Shown: positions 9,096-41,856 of the stretch, one piece after another
How positions within the stretch are numbered: the first letter of the stretch is position 1
Layout: every line of letters starts with the position of its first letter
Source of the DNA: Zygnema circumcarinatum SAG 698-1b
Lineage: Eukaryota > Plantae > Zygnematophyceae
Assembly: GCA_037447605.1 (NCBI GenBank)
Contig: CM074809.1
Location: forward strand, 1,788,689-1,852,688
Reading direction: 5' to 3'
Length of the DNA: 64,000 nucleotides
Notes under the pieces: generated by a model
Told to the model about the DNA's origin: nothing
Database searches by the model: none
Seen by the model: the letters and a program-made list of their open reading frames with translations, nothing else
Made by a program: the position numbers and the translations under genes

Positions 9096-12000
9096 ATGGC
9101 TCTTCGCGCGGCCACTCCTCTCTTCCGAAAGGTGCGTGTAGGGATGGAGGGAGGGGACAGGGGGGAAGGGAATGGGAGGAGAGGAGGAACATTGCTCTTC
9201 AGGCCTTGCTCTGCTGCCCTTCCCTTCGTTAAGGTGACAGGGGGTCGGGCGGTTGCGCTGTGACAGGCGCGCTCTCTGGCGGTTGTATTTCAACGAGCTT
9301 TGCCTGAATCGAGGAGCTACTCGGTAAAGGAAGCCGACGTCGAAGGTGAATGGAGGGCAGTCATTTTCTGTAGGGCTGCATTTTTCTGCTCTTTGTCAGT
9401 TCCGCTTGTCGTCTCTCTTCAGAGATTCTTGCTAGAGAGGCCATTATCGATATCCGGTTTTCTTAGCTTTGGAATCATTGGCTGTATAGGTACTCGTCAA
9501 TCCTCTATATACGTACTTCTTTGCCTCTCTTTCCCTTCATCATAGCGCTTAAGGGATGCGCTGACTTCAAGAGGCTGGCGCTTAATCTGTCACATTTCTT
9601 CCATCACAGATTGAACATGCTGAGCATAAGAAGAGCTTGGCACTTTTTTTTGCACTCAAATATGACTTTGCAACTACTTTTTGTCGCACCCAGTTTTTGC
9701 ATACTCACACCATACTTCGTTGCACAATCTTTTGTGCCCTAGTTATGAATGGACTTGGCGTTTCGTACAAGCTACCGCATTGCTTGTTAGCCAGTTCTCA
9801 GTCGCTCAGGCTTTTTGCTGCAGCGATGTTGGCATCGTGTCTGTCCTTTTCATTGTATGGTCTCGCTAGGGTATTCTGGGAAATTTCTCAGGATCCTTGA
9901 TAAGCATTTTTATATCTTGTAGAGATTCTTACCATGTTTACCTCCTAAATATAGGACCATTTTTTGTGCAAGAAGCCTCAATAATTGGCTAGGTTTCCCT
10001 CAGTGAATCTTTTACGGGTCAACTCGTGCACTTCTATTTTGATGAAAACATGGATACCAGGGGATTCAGGCAGTAAACAGCCTATCCGATTCCTTTGTTC
10101 CGCGATGAGGAACGGCTCGCCAAGATTAGGAAGTTGATGGTTCGTTTCTCACAAGATTTCAATGTTGTGCAGACGATATTGTGAAGCAGGCTTTCATTAA
10201 GCAGCAGACTCAACTTCGTGCGTATTTGCAAGAGCTGGAGAAAACGAAGATTCCTCTGGACCCGGAAGATTCTAAAGCGGTCAAAGAGTACGCTGAGTCG
10301 ATAAAGAAGATTCGGACCAAGTGAGTCATTTGGAACTCTTAAGGGCGCAGGAAATCCTGATTCTTGATCCTGCTCCTTGAGACGGGGCTGATCAGGTCAG
10401 CGAAATAGGCCATGTTTGCGATCAATGTTTAGAAGGAGGTTCATGCACTTGTCATTCTCTTGCTGGACTGCTTTCAAGGCATCTGTAGCTTCATCTCCTA
10501 CCTATTATTGCTATGTAGTCATCTAAATAACATGTTTAACTTGACATCTGATACATCAAACTGTCCACAAAATGTTTTATTTAGTCTCACACATGTGTTC
10601 ACATAATCAAAACTGTCTTTTTTGCAAACGTGAAAAGGTGTCAGGCTCACGCCTCTCCTCCGCTTGCCCTCAGTGCGAACGAGTCGATTGTTATGGTTGC
10701 CTTATGTCTCTCCATTTCTTGTGTAATTACAGTGGGGAGAATTTTGTGCCAGTTGGAACAGTGTATGAAATCTAAAGTGTTTATTCACAATGGTTTTTTT
10801 TTTTTTGGAGAACAGCAACTAGGTCACTGCATGCGAGGCCTGCTTGCCCTTTCCAGATTTAGCCTGGGTGGGTGTAGTCATTTGGCTATAAAGGTTGAAT
10901 TTTCCCATTTAAACCACTTAGTTCTCTCTCCGAGGGTGGAACCACTGCAGGCTTGGAGTACCATCAGTAACTGAGAAGCTAAACGACCTCCTAGAGGCAG
11001 CTGCAGAGGACTCTGAAACAGTGCGGTCATTTTTGGAGAAGTCAAGCAGTCTACGGCAAGAGTAAGTGGTGACACTTTGTTGGTGGTTCTCAAACCATCA
11101 TGTGCCAATTTCTGACGACGGCTTTGCCTTTCTAGGCGAATGTTTTCAGTGGGGATGGATGTGATGAAGGTCAGTTGGATTGCGGTGTACAAACTACAGA
11201 TCCGGATAACAGATGACGGATGTAACAGCAGCTCTCTCTCCCCCTCCCCTCCCCCTTCCGCGTTCTCCTGACACCTTGCGTAAGAGGTCATTTTTTATCT
11301 AACGAACTAATGAATTTTAGGATTTCCTTTCTGCAGGATGGGTATCGACGACGAGCTGGGAGCGGAGCCACTTATGTTTGATGCTCTTGCTGCTATCGAG
11401 AAGAAGTTAGGCAAACCTCTCGTAGTTGGGGATCCAAAGGGTGCTCAAGCTTGGCAGGAGGCTCTGGACGGCATCAATGCGAAGTAGGTGCTTGAACTTT
11501 TTCTTACAGTGGGATTTATCCATCGCAAGTCTATGGCCACCATGTTGGAGTCACATTGACTGCAACAAATTGACAGATGCATGGAACTTGTTCTTCCCAT
11601 AGGAAGTTCACAGAAGGGTTAGTTGTCAGTTTTTTGTCCTTCCAAGACAAGACGGCAACGATGGATGGCTGGATTTTGATGGATTTGTGCCAGCCTTATT
11701 GCCAAATACAAGTTCTTATTACCTGATTTTCCACATGTAGATTAGGTATGTCTTAGGTATGGTATACTTCTTATGTTCTGTGTCGTGTGAGGATACTCGT
11801 CATGTCTGAACGAGAGATCGTGCAGTGATGGTAATTTGCAAGTGCGTATGCAGGCTTGGACTGTCGGAGGCGGATCTTGAGAAGTTGGAGGGGGAGGTTG
11901 ATCTGGACATAGCGAAAGCCAATGTGGCTGAGATCAGGGCGGATGCAGAGGAGAAGATTAGCACGTATAAGCGAAGGTATGTTGTTCATCCGAAATGTTT

Positions 12001-32098: not shown

Positions 32099-32930
32099 AT
32101 TTTCTTTATCTCCTTTCCTTTCATTCTTGAACTCCTGAAATACAGAGTCCGAGTAGCCTGCTCCACAAGTTTGGTGTTTACACCCCAAAACTGTAATTGG
32201 TCCGATTTCAACTGTTCTATGTCAGGGGGCACAACAAGGGGCATGTCCCCTTCCCGGAAGGGGGGGTGGCATGTGCGCCCAACCCCGTACAAGCCGGCCG
32301 GCCCTCCCGCCCGCCCGCCACACGTGCCTGACCGGCTCCGCCCGCACCCGTCCGCGAACGCGCGCGCATGCGATTGCCACGTGGCCGGCCTGGCTGCGCT
32401 GGCGGTCGCTCAGCAAGCTCGGATCGACACTCATGATTTTCCGACTCTGTTCTGTACGGCGCGCGAATGGCCCCAATCGCGTGGCGAGCAGCTGCGCGCG
32501 CGCGGGCGGGCGGGCGGGCAGCGGGCGGATCGAGGCGGGATTGCGATCCGCGCTTGCGAACGACTACAGTAGTGGGGCAGGCGTCGTACGGGGGAGGTCG
32601 CGCGCTGAGCCTCTCACGCGATCCCAGCGCGTGATCCCCGCCCCGCGGGTCAACCGCCGCCGCGTGCATGATGCCATGCGGCGTAGACTTCCCCGCGACC
32701 TGCTGCCTCGCGATGGCGGGCGACGGGGCGAGGCGGAGCGGGTGGATCCGTGTCGCGGCACGGCGGTTAGCTGCGCTTGCTGCCGGCCGCGGCATCGGAC
32801 GGGGGGGGGGAGGGAGGGTGGGACGCAGCACTCCCCTGCTGCCGATCTGAACTCATCGATCCGATCTGATATGATCTGATCTGACATGTTCGCCCATCCA
32901 TCCGTTCATCCGCTTTGCAATTCGCCAATA

Positions 32931-33085: not shown

Positions 33086-33177
33086 GACCGTACATGCTGT
33101 TCAGTTTCCATAGTCGTACGGACATTCTAAAAGTGTTTCAAAACTCTGAAACGTTTGGATATTAGACCGTTCTAATA

Positions 33178-33395
33178 GGGGGAGTCAGACCTTGACCATC
33201 GCCAAGTCAATTTCGTAAGCCAGTCGGGCGAATTAAGCATTGGCTAGGTACGCATTTCGGTACGGCTGGGCTCGGCGGAGCCGCGGATCCCGACGCGGAA
33301 TTCGTACACGAAAGACTTTTAATAAGAAATAAGGAATAAGGAATATATAAGAAATTCGGGAATTTTGTAAGCGATGGTCAAGGTCTGACTCCCCC
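33178..33395 (-). mobile_element. MITE family 1, copy 2 (218 bp), inverted relative to copy 1
   Basis: Perfect 25-bp TIR (GGGGGAGTCAGACCTTGACCATCGC / GCGATGGTCAAGGTCTGACTCCCCC) flanked by TA on both sides. Subterminal sequences match the reverse complement of copy 1. Confidence 0.9.
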
Positions 33396-33400
33396 TAAAA

Positions 33401-33705: not shown

Positions 33706-33720
33706 CGCGTGCCACGTGGC
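33706..33720 (+). promoter_or_regulatory. CE3-like CGCGT fused to the palindromic G-box/ABRE GCCACGTGGC, ~275 bp upstream of the bHLH ATG
   Basis: Sequence CGCGTGCCACGTGGC; the identical 15-mer occurs at 44827-44841. Function is inferred from known G-box/ABRE motifs. Confidence 0.55.
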
Positions 33721-33994
33721 CGTCACAGTACCACAGGCGAAGCGTACGGCTGTGAATCTGAACTTTGGTACTGTACTCGGCCTGCCCATTGCCACGGCTG
33801 GCGGACCCTTCCGTACGGTACGAACAGTACGGCCTGGCCCGCCGCGGCGGTGCGTGGAGGGCGTGCGCGGCGCGTGGCGGGCACGCGCGGGGCCGCCACG
33901 GCGGCAGGGAGAGGGCGGCAGGGAGCAGGAGGCATGGCGGGGCGCCATGAGCGCAGGCGCGAGGGGACGGCCCGCAGGGAGGAGAGGGGAGCCC

Positions 33995-36900
33995 ATGGCG
34001 GACTCGCCCTCGCCGCCCTGGCCCCCGCCCATGTACGGGCCGTTCGGCTACGCGGCTGGAGGGCCGGCGAGCGGGGGAGACCTCGACTACGCAGTGCAGG
34101 TTGCGCCCGGGCTGGGAGGGGAAGTGCAGCTGCTGGCAGGAGGGCAGGTTGGGCCTGGGCCGCAGCACCTGGGAGAGAAGGAGTTTATGCCGCGGCAGTT
34201 GGTGCAGCAGCAGACTCAGGAGATGGTGCGCCAGCTGGCAGATCGGAAGCAGGGAGCATCGCTGCAGGCGCTGGCAAGCGGGTCGAGGAAGAGTGGGGAT
34301 CTCTCGCTGGCAGGGCAACAGCAGGTGAGAAGCAAACCTTGGTTCATGGCCATCCGGTAGGGACGCCGTCCAGCGAATGACCGACACAACAAATGCTGTT
34401 CAGTCCCTTGCCCAATGCTCCCCCTATACATTTCCACGCCTGCTGCAAGGTCTATTGCCATACCGTCTAGCCAAAGAAGCCGGCAGGGAAGACACTGCTG
34501 GCCTCCCGTTGGAGTGCCACCGCTTTCTTCAGCAGGAGGGCTGAACAGAATCAGATTTGGAGGAATCTTTTAAGCTGGAGCCTGCCGCAGCCACAGGAGC
34601 GCCATAGGTCTTGACCTCGTAGAGGCTGCGGACTTTCAGCTTTTTGGGAAGGTTGAGTGTATGAATATCCATGGGAAAGCAGCTGCAACTTTCGCAGGCT
34701 AAGGGTCACCTCAGCAATGTAGCAAGCCCTGAGTTTGAACCTGCATGCAGCAGATTGGTGCTCAGTTATTGCTTAAGCTGATTGAATCGCACAAACTGAG
34801 TACTTCATAAAGCTGTCCCTCAATGGCACCAATGAACTTAAGATAGCGATTTCGAAAGGGTTTTTTCAATTTTTTTCCTGTCCCTATGCATTGCCCTTAA
34901 CGAATGACAGTCAGCAAGGCGCGTGATGCATCATGGGAGCTGTCAAGCTTGGAACCCTGTTGCCAGTAATTTCAGTAGTCGATCATCCTTGTCATTTGTG
35001 AGGCACTGCAGTTGATCGATGATCGGTCACTGCAGAAAAGTATATGACTTTAAGAATATGATTTTCAGAAAACATAGTAAGGAGTTCGGACCTGTTGTTT
35101 TGAAACTCTCATCAATAACCAAATCGGGTTTGCTTCCTGTGTCTTTGAATTGCATGATTGTTGTCGGGACGAGCTAAGATGCAGGCCATCTCCACTTCAG
35201 TGCTTTTTCTAGCAATCGCAATTTACATCTCTTTGTTCCGTTCGAGGAACTTTGAGAAGCTTCTGCATAGACAACACTCTTTTCTGCAGCCTCCTAACAG
35301 AGGCACTTCTTATCCTTCCGGTCAAACTCCTTCTTTACAACACACTAGAGAAGAACTGCATATCACTTGGAGGAAACGAAGAAACGAATTGAAATGGAAG
35401 AGTTGGTACAAGTCCTTGGATTTGTCCAGAGAGCAGAAACCTCTATAGCTGGAAGTTTTGTGCCCTTATTATGGAAATGTTGTGCACATGCGACGAAAGT
35501 AGAGAATAGTAATAGTGCAATCTCCTCGAAGGGGAGGAGGGGGATAGGGGGCAGTGCAAGATGTTATCTTACATCACTGGCCTTGTATCTCGTGCAACCA
35601 CTATCCAACCTTCTGAACTATGTCACTTGAGAGAGCTACACCCAATTCCAATCAGTTTCAACCAGAATCTATGGGTCGTGGAGTGAGCTGAGGATTTGAT
35701 GGGAAGGGGTTTGTTTCGCCACGGCATATATCAGCTTGTCACCAATTCGAATTTCCAGGAGAATCCGAATCCAGGCTTAACAAACATAGTAGTGAAGATT
35801 TTTTTGATGGTTTGAAGGAAGTTGAACTTGCGTTGGTGCTATCACGCCGTCAGCTGCTCCTCAGACCATGGCCAGGAAAATCACAAACGTTGTTTTGCAA
35901 TTACGTAGGAATCGGAAGCCCTCTACATTTAGTTAACTTGGCTGGTTATTGCGATCAATATAGATGCGGTAATCTGACGCTTTCAATTGCGGGATGAGAA
36001 GACAGGTGGTTTCTTGAGGCGTTTGTTGGTATTGGCCTGTATTAGATTATTTCATTGCTTGATCACCACCCATGAATACCCTTTGGCACCGCTCGGTTCA
36101 AACTGGACCACTTTAAGTGCAATAGCCTGCATTCCCGCATTAAGTTATTGCTGTCGGAGTGACTGCCCGTCTGCTTTCTGTAGCAATCTGACACTTCTAG
36201 TTCAGGGATGGGGGGTGGAGGAAAGGACCTTTAAGGTCTCAGGCTCTAGCAGGCCTTCAATTAGTGGTGGAGACGGAGACCCTGTGACTGTGCGCAAAGT
36301 ACATAAAGCAGACCGTGAAAAGTTGAGGAGAGATCGCCTGAATGAGCATTTCATTGAGTTGGCGGAAGTGCTTGGTGAGCCTCTGGGCCCATCCGAAGGG
36401 GAAACGTGTTTGCAAGGATGCCAAACGGTTTTTAAAGCAGTACGTGCTGCAGACCAAACATTCGAGAAAGCATGGAACAGTGCATGAGCAGCTTTGCATG
36501 GAGCCCATCATTTGAGATGTGAGAGAACTTGAGATTCTTTGGGAGCTGGTTCAAGCTACAGAAAGTTATCAGTGTTGGCTTTCGACCAGAAAAACCTGGA
36601 TTTCTTGATGTCTATACTAGAATTTGCCTCCAAGTTTTGTCTCACTTCGATCATGTGGTCATGTACATGTGATGTGTCCCATTCGCTAGTTTCTAGGCCA
36701 TATCCTTATCAATCTGCATATTTCAACCGTTGCATTTCTGTGTCTTTGTTCATTTTGGGCACCACCCATCCCTTGTCTTTGTACTAAGTTGTCCATTCTA
36801 GCCCTTGACCTCCTTGTGCCGTTGCAGTAGAACGATAGTTGTTGATGCTGAAAAAAACTTCTGTTCTCCAACGTAATGGTGCTGGTTACAGCTGTTATAC

Positions 36901-39771
36901 GGATTTATTGCTGTTCAAACGTGACATCCAAATGGTCTGAAAATGAACAAATTATGGAGGGGTGCTGTTTTGGGGTTGTGGGGTTGGGCTGGGGGAGCGC
37001 GAGGGAGGGTGTTGGGTGGGTGGATGGGAAAGAGATGCAGATCCTGAAAAGCCGAAGAATGACAAAGCCACCATCCTGGGGGACAGTGTGCAGATGGTCC
37101 ATGATCTCCGCAGTTCGGTGAAGCGTCTCAAAACAGAACACGCAGTGCTTCTTGACGAGCAGAGAGAGGTGGGTCTGAACTTAGATTTTTTTGCTTTCGT
37201 GGATGAGGTGCAACTTGACGAGGAGAAAGGGATTGAAGCGTCGATGCGGGCTTTGAAATGGTTCGAGGGACTGAGCTCAGTCAAACAAACAGGGCAGAGA
37301 TTGAGTGAACGAAGGATTTAAATTAGTAAGAGTTATGAAATTCAACGAATCCTTTGCACAAGTCAAACTTCCTTGAAGAAAATGCGCTGGTGAGATACTT
37401 TTTGTCCCTATTGTGCTGCGATCTACTAACTTGCCTTCTGGTCGGGGTTTGTCCACGATTGCAGTTGACTAATGAGAAGGCGGAACTTCGGCAGGAGAAA
37501 ATGGCTTTGAAGATGGAGACTGATCAGTTGCAAATTCAGCTACAAGAGTGTCTGCGTGCAATGCTGCCATGGTTGTCATCCAGCGGCGCATTTCCTGCCC
37601 CGACACTCCATCCTCCCGCTCCTTCAGCCACTTCCCCGCCCACTTCTTCACCTTCTGCTGCAATGGCACTCCCTGCAGGCTGCGCCCCAAGTTTCTCCAG
37701 CCATTGGTCGTCTCCACATTCACAGCCGCAGCCGACACAACCTGAACAAGAGGAACATGTGAGATCCCTAAAATCTGAAAGTGGAAAAGGGGAAGCTAGT
37801 CATCAGAGCTCGGAAAAGCATCGTATTGAGAACGATCGGGACGTCTCCATTTCGCCAGGGCATCTCGCACAGGCCTCCTCTCAAATCCATTCTGGTTCGC
37901 ATTTGGAATGTCCAAGCAATCAACTACCTTCTCAATTTCCTCTGAAAGCCCCGTTATCCCTGTCTCTAAGTCAATCCTCATGTGCAGTTGACCAACCTGC
38001 AGCTTCCCTTACTCCAATTCATCATCCTCAACATCCATTTCAATCTTATCACCTTCACCCTCAACAACAACTTTACCCTCAAATTCACCATCATACTCAC
38101 TCCCCAGCTCATCCGCATGGTTTCTCGCACCCTCCTACTTCCTCTCACACTCACCCTCATCCTCATGCTCATCCCCACTATCCGACTCAACCTCAGCCAT
38201 GTCCCTCATCTCCCACCAAATCCTCAGCACCTATTGCAGAGCCCTCACAGCTTCCATCATCTTCTCAATCTCCTCCGACACATGGCCACGCTCTCCACGC
38301 TCCACTACCGCTTCATCCTCACCATCCCCAAATCACATATTCCTCTCTCACCAGGCAGCACGTTCCTTCTTCTTACGTTCCCATACCCTCTGGTCCTGTT
38401 CTCTCTATACACCCTCTTTTGGGATCATACCAAGCCATTGTTAGCCTGCCCCATGCACCTGCCAGTGTCCCCCACCCAGATAGCTCTCCTTGTCTCAATC
38501 AAAGTCCATACGCACAGCAGCCGCCTGTCTCGTACCACTCCGCCCCTGACCACCAACCCCCCTCATCTTCCACTTCCCAGCAGCCGCCTCCAAGCCGACC
38601 CTATCCTCAGTATGCGGCCCCTCAGCCTTCTCCCACCTTCCTCATGCCAATGCAAATGGTTCAGTCCTCGCGTTCTCCTCCAGCCCATCTTGGAGGTGGC
38701 CAGGCAGTCTATGCTCCCTACTCTGGGAGCCCCCCTGCGTACGCCTACGCACATGGGCCAGGAAGTCCGATGCCAAGTCAGCAGGGGGCTCTAAATTATT
38801 CTGCGATGTATCAGTTGCCGGGGCAGCTGCAGTTGGCAGGGCATGTGGCTATGCCATCACAGCTGTCACCAGTGCATCCCTCTCTCCAGCTGCAAATGGC
38901 TGCTCCTTCAGGGATGCCGCAGATGGCGGCTGTGCCTCATTGGCTATACCAGACAGCGACTCAGCAGCCACGAATGCCTATCGCAGTGCCATCCGCTGAG
39001 TTCATGCAAACTCGAGAGGCAGCCAACCAGGTGAGCCTATTCACAGCAAAGAGAGAGCGATGGTCATGCCTTTTGCCGTTGCTGCCGTGTTGTTGCGTAG
39101 GTCAATGGGTCTGTCATAAAGCATTAGTCATTTACTCCTTCGCTAAATGCGAGTGGATTGACCCTGCAAGTCCTCTCAATGTGAAGTAATTACAAGGTGA
39201 GTGAAACTTTGCTCTGTTGAGGATGTTCTCGGCATGGCCTTGCTTCCTGTTCCTAATTGTCAGCTTCAATGGGGTTTGGTGGTAGTTGATTGGGGTTTCT
39301 GAATTTCATCAATCAAATACCAGGACGGGTTGGTCTATAACTGTCCTGAGTTCCCACCGAAAACAACCTTATCATTTAGTGTCTCCTATCCAATACAATA
39401 TCTAGATATCTGGCCAGAATCTGGTCTGGTGTTGTCTGCGCAGATAATGCAAGTCATGGATCCTGAATCGACTATGTCAAGGCGCGTTTTGAATTGTCTC
39501 TCTACAGAACCTCAGCTCTGGACAAGAAAACGAACCGGTGGCAAGCAGAGAACATCACTGTGGATGTTCAGGAGGAGGGGGGCCTGCTCCGTCCTCTGAA
39601 TCGGCTCCGTCCCCAGCAATGTTTTCTCTCGCACCCCCAAACCAAAGAGTGGCACGGAACAGTAGTGAAGGAAGCAGCGGGAATTCAGGGAAGGCATCAC
39701 CGGCAGGAGAGGCGTCTCACGAGCGGGTAATTTTGCACCACGATCCGACAATCAGACCTCCCGCTGCATAG
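33995..39771 (+). CDS. bHLH-ZIP transcription factor, subgroup IVb (bHLH121/URI, bHLH11, POPEYE family), with a long P/H/Q/S-rich region and predicted C-terminal RPPAA
   Basis: Exons ~36201/36206-36374, 37041-37168, 37465-39030 and 39508-39771. They give RKVHKADREKLRRDRLNEHFIELAEVL-DPEKPKNDKATILGDSVQMVHDL...ELTNEKAELRQEK...RAMLPW, which is IVb-diagnostic. The first exon 33995-34324 is plausible but less certain, and extra 5' exons are possible. Confidence 0.9.
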
Positions 39772-41856
39772 CCAAGTAGACCGATCTCTTCTGTTGCTTT
39801 ATGGAGCATTGTAAGTAGAGTCCGCCCAGCACCTTCTGCAAAGCAGATTGGCGGACTATCTCTTATGTAGATATACGTACTTCGAATATAGTTGTTAGGC
39901 ACAGCCAATGCAAAGCATTGTTTTCTTTTTGTAGGTTCCCATGAAGCCCCGCACACGTACATGTGAAAAAGTGTCAAGAGCGTTAGGTTTGCAGGAAAGT
40001 AGTGACATTTATTTGCCAAAAGCTTCGCCGCAAGGTGTCGCTGAAATTTGTCTTGTTGCTGGGAAGCTCGTGGGATCGCACGGGTGAGGCATCGAATGAT
40101 GCTTGAAACAAAGGTTGATATTGCTTAGAGGTCTCTGAGCAGGCACAGAGATCAGCTCGTATTGGTCCAATCAGAACTAAAAAATTCTTCCTTGATGTCC
40201 ACATAGTCCTATTTCGCCAACCCTTTAGCTTTGGCATTTCAGGTGAGTCAGACAGAGGGTTAATAAGTCAAGTCAGTATGCTTTAATGTATTTCAGACTA
40301 TTCTTAAGTAGGAAAACATTTTTTGCTTCCCAAGGTATGGGCGTGCTGCCAATAATAAAGTCATTCTGAGGTAATATTTAAATCCACTGATGGCCTGGAA
40401 ACTTTCCCCGGCAGGAACAATCACTGCGTGAATTTTAACTGGAAAGATATGTGCCATGCACAGTTGCCACTACAGTTTTTAAAAGCTAATAAAGTCGACT
40501 TCCATCTATCAGCGAAGACAGATAGTCGTGATGGTTGCCACCGCAGTTAACCTCGGTAAAGCAATTTTCCAATGAAAGTTTCCCGTCGTATAATTTTCCT
40601 CTGTCAGAAGAGTAGGGAGAAGAAGCAATGGCCAGCGGCAGCCCTAATTCGCAAAATCTGTCCAACTTAACAGAATAACTTCGGTTACTTCACCTATAAC
40701 TCGTCAAATTTCGCCAGTTTAGTGCGTATGAGGTGTGAGTGTGGCCCACAGAAATTGTTGTTTGACCAAACTGCCAGTGTGGGCGCAACACTGTGGGCCG
40801 TTTATATCTGACAACTGCCAGGAATGAAATAAAGCGACAATGTGGCACAACAACGCTTCCAATTTTCTGACTTTATCGAGTCTAGAGCTTTGGCCCTCGA
40901 GCAATTTCGCGATGAACATGCTTCACAAGACCGGTTTTGTTACCTGGTGTAGCACTTTTTGCCCTCTGAGCCTTGAAAAATTGAAATCGCTGCGTTTTGC
41001 TATGAAAGCAGATTTTTTTCTTTATGGCTTCTTTCTTTAAAAAAAAAAAAAAAAAGGGTGGTAACAAGGATCTTTGTTTCATTCTAGGAACCTTAGAAGC
41101 CGGTTAACAAAAGCCAAGCAATGGAGGCTGGGGAGAGGGAAATGCGTTGGAATTGGAGCCTGGAAAAGACGTGATGGGTGGAGTAGGGAGAAAGACGGGG
41201 ACTCTAAGAAGGGAGAGAGTAAAAGGGACTGCTGGGCTGGTCTCTCTCTCTCGATCTGACAGCCAGTCAGCGAGCGAGTCTGTTACCTTGATTCCCACAC
41301 TCGCCAAAAGAGTCAAACAGGATTCAGGGAGAACTAAACGATCATTTTCGTCAAAAATTCCAAAATTTACAGTAAGCCAAAATGCCCCGGGACGAAAAAC
41401 TTTAGGGATACAACGGAAAGACATAGAAATTAAAAAACAAAAAAGAAATTTAAAGGGCGCGAAACTGCGGTAGGTGAAGGGGCGGCCCATCCCCTCCCTT
41501 TCTGCCTCCAGCGTCTGCTGCTGCAGGGCAGGGCAGGCAGCAGGCCATGGCGGAGTCAGCGCCATTGTTTTTATTATTTGAAGAGCACAACACAGAAATG
41601 TACATTCCAAAAGGTTGCAGAAAGATTGCCTTCTATTTGAGTCTGACCGTAATTGGACTGACTTCTTCGACATTTGTCCTCGATGGACCAAAAAGGTGAT
41701 ACAACCCAGCATTGGATCGTCCTATAAACAATCACAATAATGGCCCCTGAAGCCCTCCCTCACAGGACCATCTGCGGCACACGCCAAGCCTTGGCGCTTT
41801 TCTCTCATCCCCTCCTTCCCACTCTCGTTCTTTCTCCCGTTGACCTATTCCTCGAA

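Follow-up and report, generated by a model that had tools for sequence, protein, structure and literature searches.

Can a bHLH transcription factor of subgroup IVb carry the C-terminal end by which iron-sensing BRUTUS (BTS) ligases recognise, for destruction, the iron regulators of subgroup IVc? The question was raised by a gene in a 64,000-nucleotide (nt) stretch, hereafter the window, of the alga Zygnema circumcarinatum SAG 698-1b (GCA_037447605.1, contig CM074809.1, positions 1,788,689 to 1,852,688, forward strand). An initial annotation, made from the sequence alone, had proposed that this gene joins an IVb-like bHLH domain to a tail of the type found on IVc factors and IRON MAN (IMA) peptides, and that its product may be an ancestral or chimeric factor degraded directly by BTS. 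Here, we report that the gene is expressed and spliced, that its product of 818 amino acids (aa) combines an IVb-type domain with a C-terminus reading ...HHDPTIRPPAA, and that this tail is homologous to the tails of bryophyte IVb proteins. We place the probability that the tail binds BTS, and that the factor is turned over in response to iron, at about 0.55.

The tail depends on the removal of the fourth intron from a five-exon gene (33995-39771, + strand), for which translation of the candidate exons gave a single frame open through all exons. A second in-frame ATG lies at 33947, upstream of the start codon at 33995. Intron 4 has the donor CAG/gtgagc (39030/39031) and the acceptor tctctctacag/AAC (39507/39508); its phase-0 removal gives ...ASHERVILHHDPTIRPPAA and a stop, and the last exon reads ...ERVILHHDPTIRPPAA before its TAG. 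When the 33 AG dinucleotides in 39031-39516 were tested as acceptors, the DPTIRPPAA tail was obtained from 39508 alone. Splicing was assessed with contigs of four public runs placed on 33900-39850 (seven runs contain the stretch), with the limit that contigs do not yield true isoform ratios. All four predicted GT..AG introns were recovered as contig joints in run X1, run X2 or both, so both runs hold spliced RNA, and a single contig spanned 37463-39030 in each. The joint 39030/39508, a 477-nt GT..AG skip, was found at a contig depth of 232 in X1 and 90 in X2, which come from two studies. A second joint, 39030/39444, was present in X2 at a depth of 35 and was not found in X1; this acceptor, 64 nt upstream of the main one, shifts the frame and yields a 51-aa end, ...ACSVL, without Pro-Ala-Ala. 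Unspliced contigs crossed each intron at lower depth. By contig depth, the tail-encoding form is the major mRNA isoform, being the deeper of the two in X2, the sole run with both. The phase-0 splice and the alternative acceptor near 39443 had both been predicted from the sequence, and both proved to be real. Physcomitrium likewise has annotated isoforms that differ at the C-terminus.

The alternative acceptor and the unspliced contigs are what could be cited for the tail being an artefact of the gene model, arising from a wrong acceptor, a wrong frame or an untranscribed open reading frame (ORF). However, the frame is open across five exons, the last exon is homologous to bryophyte last exons, and the 39508 form occurs in both studies and is deeper than the alternative where both occur. 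The spliced contigs therefore lead us to reject this reading, which we regard as extremely improbable.

The domain encoded by exons 2 to 4 was compared with known proteins at several levels. Pfam family PF23177 (bHLH_IRO3), which takes its name from IRO3, a rice protein of subgroup IVb, matched exon 2 and exon 3 separately. An exhaustive phmmer search of 1.84 billion representative proteins with the 56-aa exon 2 returned 68 matches, 67 of which carried KADREKLRRD[RK]LNE.F and, if long enough, DPDRPKNDKATIL. The top match (P0008, Trifolium, 1314 aa, 22 stretches), in which the bHLH signature was absent, was rejected as a repeat artefact. Named relatives among the matches were Amborella and Selaginella bHLH121, Physcomitrium BHLH062-like and Marchantia MpBHLH49, together with proteins of Psilotum, Diphasiastrum and Closterium. 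No IVc sequence exceeded the threshold in this search, every significant match being IVb-type. In the alga, the IVb signature of the basic region and helix 1, [RK]KxxKADREKLRRD[RK]LNExF, takes the form RKVHKADREKLRRDRLNEHF, and the IVb loop and helix 2, DPDRPKNDKATIL, with the adjoining zipper ending in [ML][FL]PW, are represented by DPEKPKNDKATIL ... RAMLPW. Each of the motifs quoted in the initial annotation (KADREKLRRDRLNEHF, DPEKPKNDKATIL and RAMLPW) was found.

The complete bHLH-ZIP (RKVHK...RAMLPW, 106 residues) aligned without gaps to its counterparts in Marchantia, Physcomitrium and Selaginella. Identity was greatest with Marchantia polymorpha and Physcomitrium (79/106, 74-75%), compared to 64/106 with Closterium and 58-66/106 with angiosperm proteins. 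The two introns inside the domain (between ...VL and D, and after ...RE) coincide with the positions at which IVb exon fragments of land plants read through into intron sequence. Searches of a word-indexed protein database returned less: the exon-2 ORF found seven exon fragments only, all of them IVb, the whole of exon 4 found no match because its low-complexity linker swamped the query, and the zipper region of exon 4 alone found no match in this database, from which the alga's own protein is absent. Pfam, signature, named relatives, identities and intron positions therefore agree in placing the domain clearly with the URI/bHLH121 type of subgroup IVb, in comparisons that covered IVb sequences, as the initial annotation had supposed.

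The C-terminus of this IVb-type protein fits the IVc-type PP[V/A]A or PAA end, with a free C-terminal P-[A/V]-A. A longer IVc end pattern, given as typical in the initial annotation, is D-x-x-LRPP[V/A]A. Removal of the terminal PAA from Arabidopsis bHLH104 stabilised the protein and abolished BTS binding and ubiquitination, exchange of the terminal Ala for Val abolished BTS binding in all four IVc factors, and the PVA of the other IVc factors and the PAA of IMA peptides were recognised likewise (PMC13725251). A conserved 'PPVA motif' has been described on bHLH34 (PMC7152604), IMA1 requires its last seven residues, YDYAPAA, and BTS binding was abolished in ILR3 and bHLH104 without their last 25 residues (PMC9226616). 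That the P-A-A end is a BTS recognition unit, as the initial annotation had stated, agrees with this literature (PMC13725251, PMC7152604, PMC9226616). HRZ/BTS-type ligases carrying three hemerythrin-like sequences are found in every major group of the green lineage, algae included (PMC12022348).

Angiosperm IVb proteins are not known to carry such an end. No P[A/V]A end was present among ~20 full-length IVb homologues or among the seed-plant IVb transcripts of metatranscriptomes; a metagenome scan gave 61 loci, all IVb, and a regular-expression scan for ORFs ending in PP[AV]A downstream of ~45 IVb genomic loci gave none. Seed-plant, lycophyte and fern IVb homologues were without the tail. A relic of it in mosses surfaced by tblastn only, in which the alga's last exon matched the terminal ORF of moss IVb genes (L018-L022), ~1.9 kb downstream of their bHLH, reading ...GSGEHHQSSRGPQDPTLRPPASHS and a stop. 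DPTIRPPAA of the alga lines up with DPTLRPPAS of the mosses, and in a MAFFT alignment the RPP residues of the alga, mosses and Marchantia fall in one column. On shuffling of the alga's tail, the observed score was reached by 3/5000 shuffles against the moss tail and 42/5000 against that of Marchantia paleacea; the resemblance to bryophyte tails is more than chance. The tail exon had no match in PDB or Pfam. Among the sampled sequences, the exact Pro-Ala-Ala carboxyl end survives in the alga alone.

On this alignment, the last exon of IVb genes has long carried the box [DE]P[TS][LI]RPP, with a carboxyl end that has been extended or substituted in bryophytes. The comparison supports a tail box that is ancestral in the IVb lineage, not a recent graft. 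Of the two origins put forward in the initial annotation, the ancestral one gains from the decayed box kept by bryophyte IVb last exons, and the chimeric one is rejected because the alga's last exon is orthologous to theirs. A BTS degron at the C-terminus was probably present before the divergence of land plants; IVb would have lost it afterwards and IVc retained it, an order of gain and loss that we infer from these tails.

The age of the box also lends itself to a different account of the gene, in which it descends from an undivided IVb/IVc ancestor, or is the alga's only IV(b/c) gene; IVb would have kept the ancestral domain sequence, and IVc would have retained the tail while its domain diverged. 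The box is common to bryophyte IVb genes, hence older than land plants, and a tree of IVb domains was without resolution at its base, both of which suit this account. However, all hallmark positions of the domain agree with IVb of land plants, and its identity to the bryophyte IVb proteins is 74-75%. We regard an undivided ancestor as the main open rival, possible though somewhat unlikely; it would alter the label given to the gene and not the mechanism.

In the mechanism that we favour, the N-terminal third of the protein (the bHLH-ZIP) would dimerise and bind G-box/E-box DNA, and the disordered C-terminus would dock, through its free ...RPPAA end, on the C-terminal part of BTS/HRZ, as bHLH104 and IMA peptides do. 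BTS/HRZ, an iron-binding hemerythrin E3 ligase, would recognise the tail when iron is bound, so that in the iron-sufficient state the factor would be ubiquitinated and removed. Use of the 39444 acceptor or retention of the intron would yield a protein without the degron.

Several observations weigh against this proposal. In yeast, BTS was not bound when ILR3 or bHLH104 was reduced to its last 25 residues (PMC9226616). As removal of those residues abolished binding too, the tail may be needed for recognition and yet not be enough for it. The isoform without the tail exists, at the lower depth given above for X2. Two Closterium homologues end ...PHWLWAASHRPA and ...ATPALQE, with no canonical tail, and the homologue L001 (Logan SRR9302961), whose bHLH region is alike to that of the alga, shows none either, so the intact end is not shared by streptophyte algae at large. 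Control of an IVb factor by BTS is not new in itself, which weakens one point of the initial annotation: in Arabidopsis, phospho-URI accumulates in bts-3 and BTS is required for URI turnover (PMC6911256), and one study reported that BTS and URI interact in yeast two-hybrid (PMC9226616).

Two points favour another role for the C-terminal box, for instance in binding a partner of IVb factors or in directing their localisation, with a Pro-Ala-Ala end that does not recruit BTS. Bryophytes keep the [DE]P[TS]LR(PP) core and not the terminal Ala, suggesting selection on the core and not on the carboxyl end, and Arabidopsis URI, which has no such tail, still reaches BTS (PMC6911256, PMC9226616). Yet the free C-terminal P-A-A is the exact unit needed for BTS recognition (PMC13725251), and the RPP in front of it agrees with the PPVA/PPAA setting in IVc (PMC7152604). 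On balance, we consider such a role unlikely and retain BTS recognition of the tail as the preferred reading.

A bolder extension of BTS recognition, which we put forward tentatively and think doubtful as a whole, is that the URI-like factor is a direct, and possibly the only, BTS/HRZ substrate in the alga. The pair would represent an ancestral two-component circuit of one bHLH factor with a C-terminal Pro-Ala-Ala degron and one hemerythrin E3 ligase. The IVc degron of land plants would derive from this circuit, as would, at a later stage, the IMA decoy peptides, with IVb losing its tail, and the 39444 isoform would be a degron-less, BTS-resistant form.

In the searchable literature, no paper on the IVb/IVc-BTS module in bryophytes or streptophyte algae was found, and no paper found names a BTS/HRZ substrate outside angiosperms, though the ligases are conserved down to green algae. 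Within that literature, three elements are new: an IVb-type protein with an intact IVc/IMA-type carboxyl end, evidence for an ancestral origin of the box in the IVb lineage, with decay in bryophytes, and a concrete candidate BTS substrate in an alga. Taken with the decayed moss and liverwort tails, the alga's tail offers a testable history, in which the degron is older than land plants, was once carried by a URI-type factor and was lost from IVb. That history could explain why Arabidopsis URI is cleared in a BTS-dependent manner without a tail of its own. Whether Pro-Ala-Ala alone makes a degron when placed in another protein context, a question that the 2026 bHLH104 paper names as open, also finds a natural test in the alga's protein.

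Further observations were made in the window and in the relatives of the gene. The linker encoded by exon 4 (~485 aa) is disordered and rich in Pro, Ser, Gln, Ala and His. A metal-binding role is conceivable for its His/Pro-rich tract; bryophyte homologues have His-rich N-termini (13 per 60) instead of this linker tract (18 per 60). Close to the end of exon 4 lies the box VPHWLYQ (38930-38950), with counterparts near the long-exon end in Closterium (MPHWLWAASHRPA and a stop, L003 ~10050-10088) and L001 (IPHWLSA, ~3560); PHWL[YWS] is possibly a motif conserved among algal IVb proteins. The IVb genes L001 and L004 (SRR9302959), from two organisms, have the variant RRNRINEQF, and their introns are very short (~70 nt). 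CC.CC and LxLAPP features are common to the last exons of L001 and the alga, and that of L001 shows no RPPAA end.

The palindrome GCCACGTGGC occurs at 32376, 33711, 44832, 59236 and 59319, five copies compared to 0.02 expected from shuffles. Each lies in a GC-rich island and their flanks differ, so a single repeat is not their common source; they resemble promoter elements belonging to several genes, and the copy upstream of the bHLH gene may be a candidate bHLH or bZIP promoter site. Just upstream of the promoter island is a perfect 27-nt inverted repeat (33176-33202 and 33371-33397, with 168 nt between the arms) that looks like a small terminal-inverted-repeat element. Positions of the features and the C-termini of bryophyte homologues are collected in Table 1.

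Table 1 Features of the bHLH gene and its surroundings (window coordinates), and C-terminal sequences of bryophyte IVb homologues
Feature	Position	Strand	Remarks
Palindromic extended G-box GCCACGTGGC	33711..33720	.	~285 nt upstream of the bHLH ATG, GC-rich island
Exon 1	33995..34324	+	Start codon 33995; 110-aa low-complexity N-terminus; joint 34324/36206 in X1 and X2
Exon 2	36206..36374	+	Basic region and helix 1 (RKVHKADREKLRRDRLNEHFIELAEVL, from 36293); PF23177 bHLH_IRO3 and PF00010; joint 36374/37041 in X1
Exon 3	37041..37168	+	Loop, helix 2 and zipper start (DPEKPKNDKATILGDSVQMVHDLRSSVKRLKTEHAVLLDEQRE); PF23177; alignment to homologues; joint 37168/37465 in X1 and X2
Exon 4	37465..39030	+	Remaining leucine zipper to RAMLPW at 37572, then linker of ~485 aa
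His/Pro-rich tract	37999..38178	+	18 His per 60 residues (residues 388-447), within the disordered linker
Intron 4	39031..39507	+	GT..AG, phase 0; alternative acceptor 39443/39444 inside
Last coding exon	39508..39771	+	87 aa and TAG stop 39769-39771; contig runs past 39850 as 3' untranslated region
C-terminal box HHDPTIRPPAA	39736..39768	+	Free Pro-Ala-Ala end; candidate BRUTUS/HRZ recognition motif
C-terminus, moss loci L018-L022			...QDPTLRPPASHS and stop; tblastn
C-terminal region, moss paralogue L015			...RIQLLRPPPLLE...; contains LLRPPPLLE
C-terminus, Physcomitrium isoform X1			...LEPSLRSAEQLPKL and stop; last residues EPSLRSAEQLPKL and stop
C-terminus, Marchantia paleacea			...THDTSSGRPPVI and stop; HDTSSGRPPVI and stop
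C-terminus, Marchantia polymorpha			...THDTSFGRPLVK and stop; Marchantia ends are GRPPVI or GRPLVK and stop

Compared to known systems, the gene is closest to URI/bHLH121 and its land-plant orthologues (MpBHLH49, Physcomitrium BHLH062-like, and Selaginella and Amborella bHLH121), with which it shares the bHLH basic region and helix 1, the DP..PKNDKATIL loop, a leucine zipper ending in [ML][FL]PW, the intron positions, a long disordered C-terminal half and an orthologous last exon. It differs from them in length, with its 818 aa and His/Pro-rich tract, and in its end, as the intact ...RPPAA-COOH is found on the alga's protein only, the sampled bryophytes having decayed versions and vascular plants none. 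IVc proteins are short, about 226-320 aa. Unlike theirs, the DNA-binding and dimerisation domain of the alga is IVb-type and all its database matches are IVb; what the protein has in common with bHLH34, bHLH104, ILR3/bHLH105 and bHLH115 is the C-terminal PP[V/A]A or PAA end, the BTS recognition motif in which the terminal Ala is essential (PMC13725251, PMC7152604, PMC9226616). With IRON MAN/FEP peptides, whose terminal ...APAA is read by BTS/BTSL (PMC9226616), the last three residues alone correspond. Those angiosperm peptides are ~50 aa long, contain an Asp-rich stretch and lack a DNA-binding domain (PMC10167411), whereas the alga presents the same three residues at the end of an 818-aa transcription factor.

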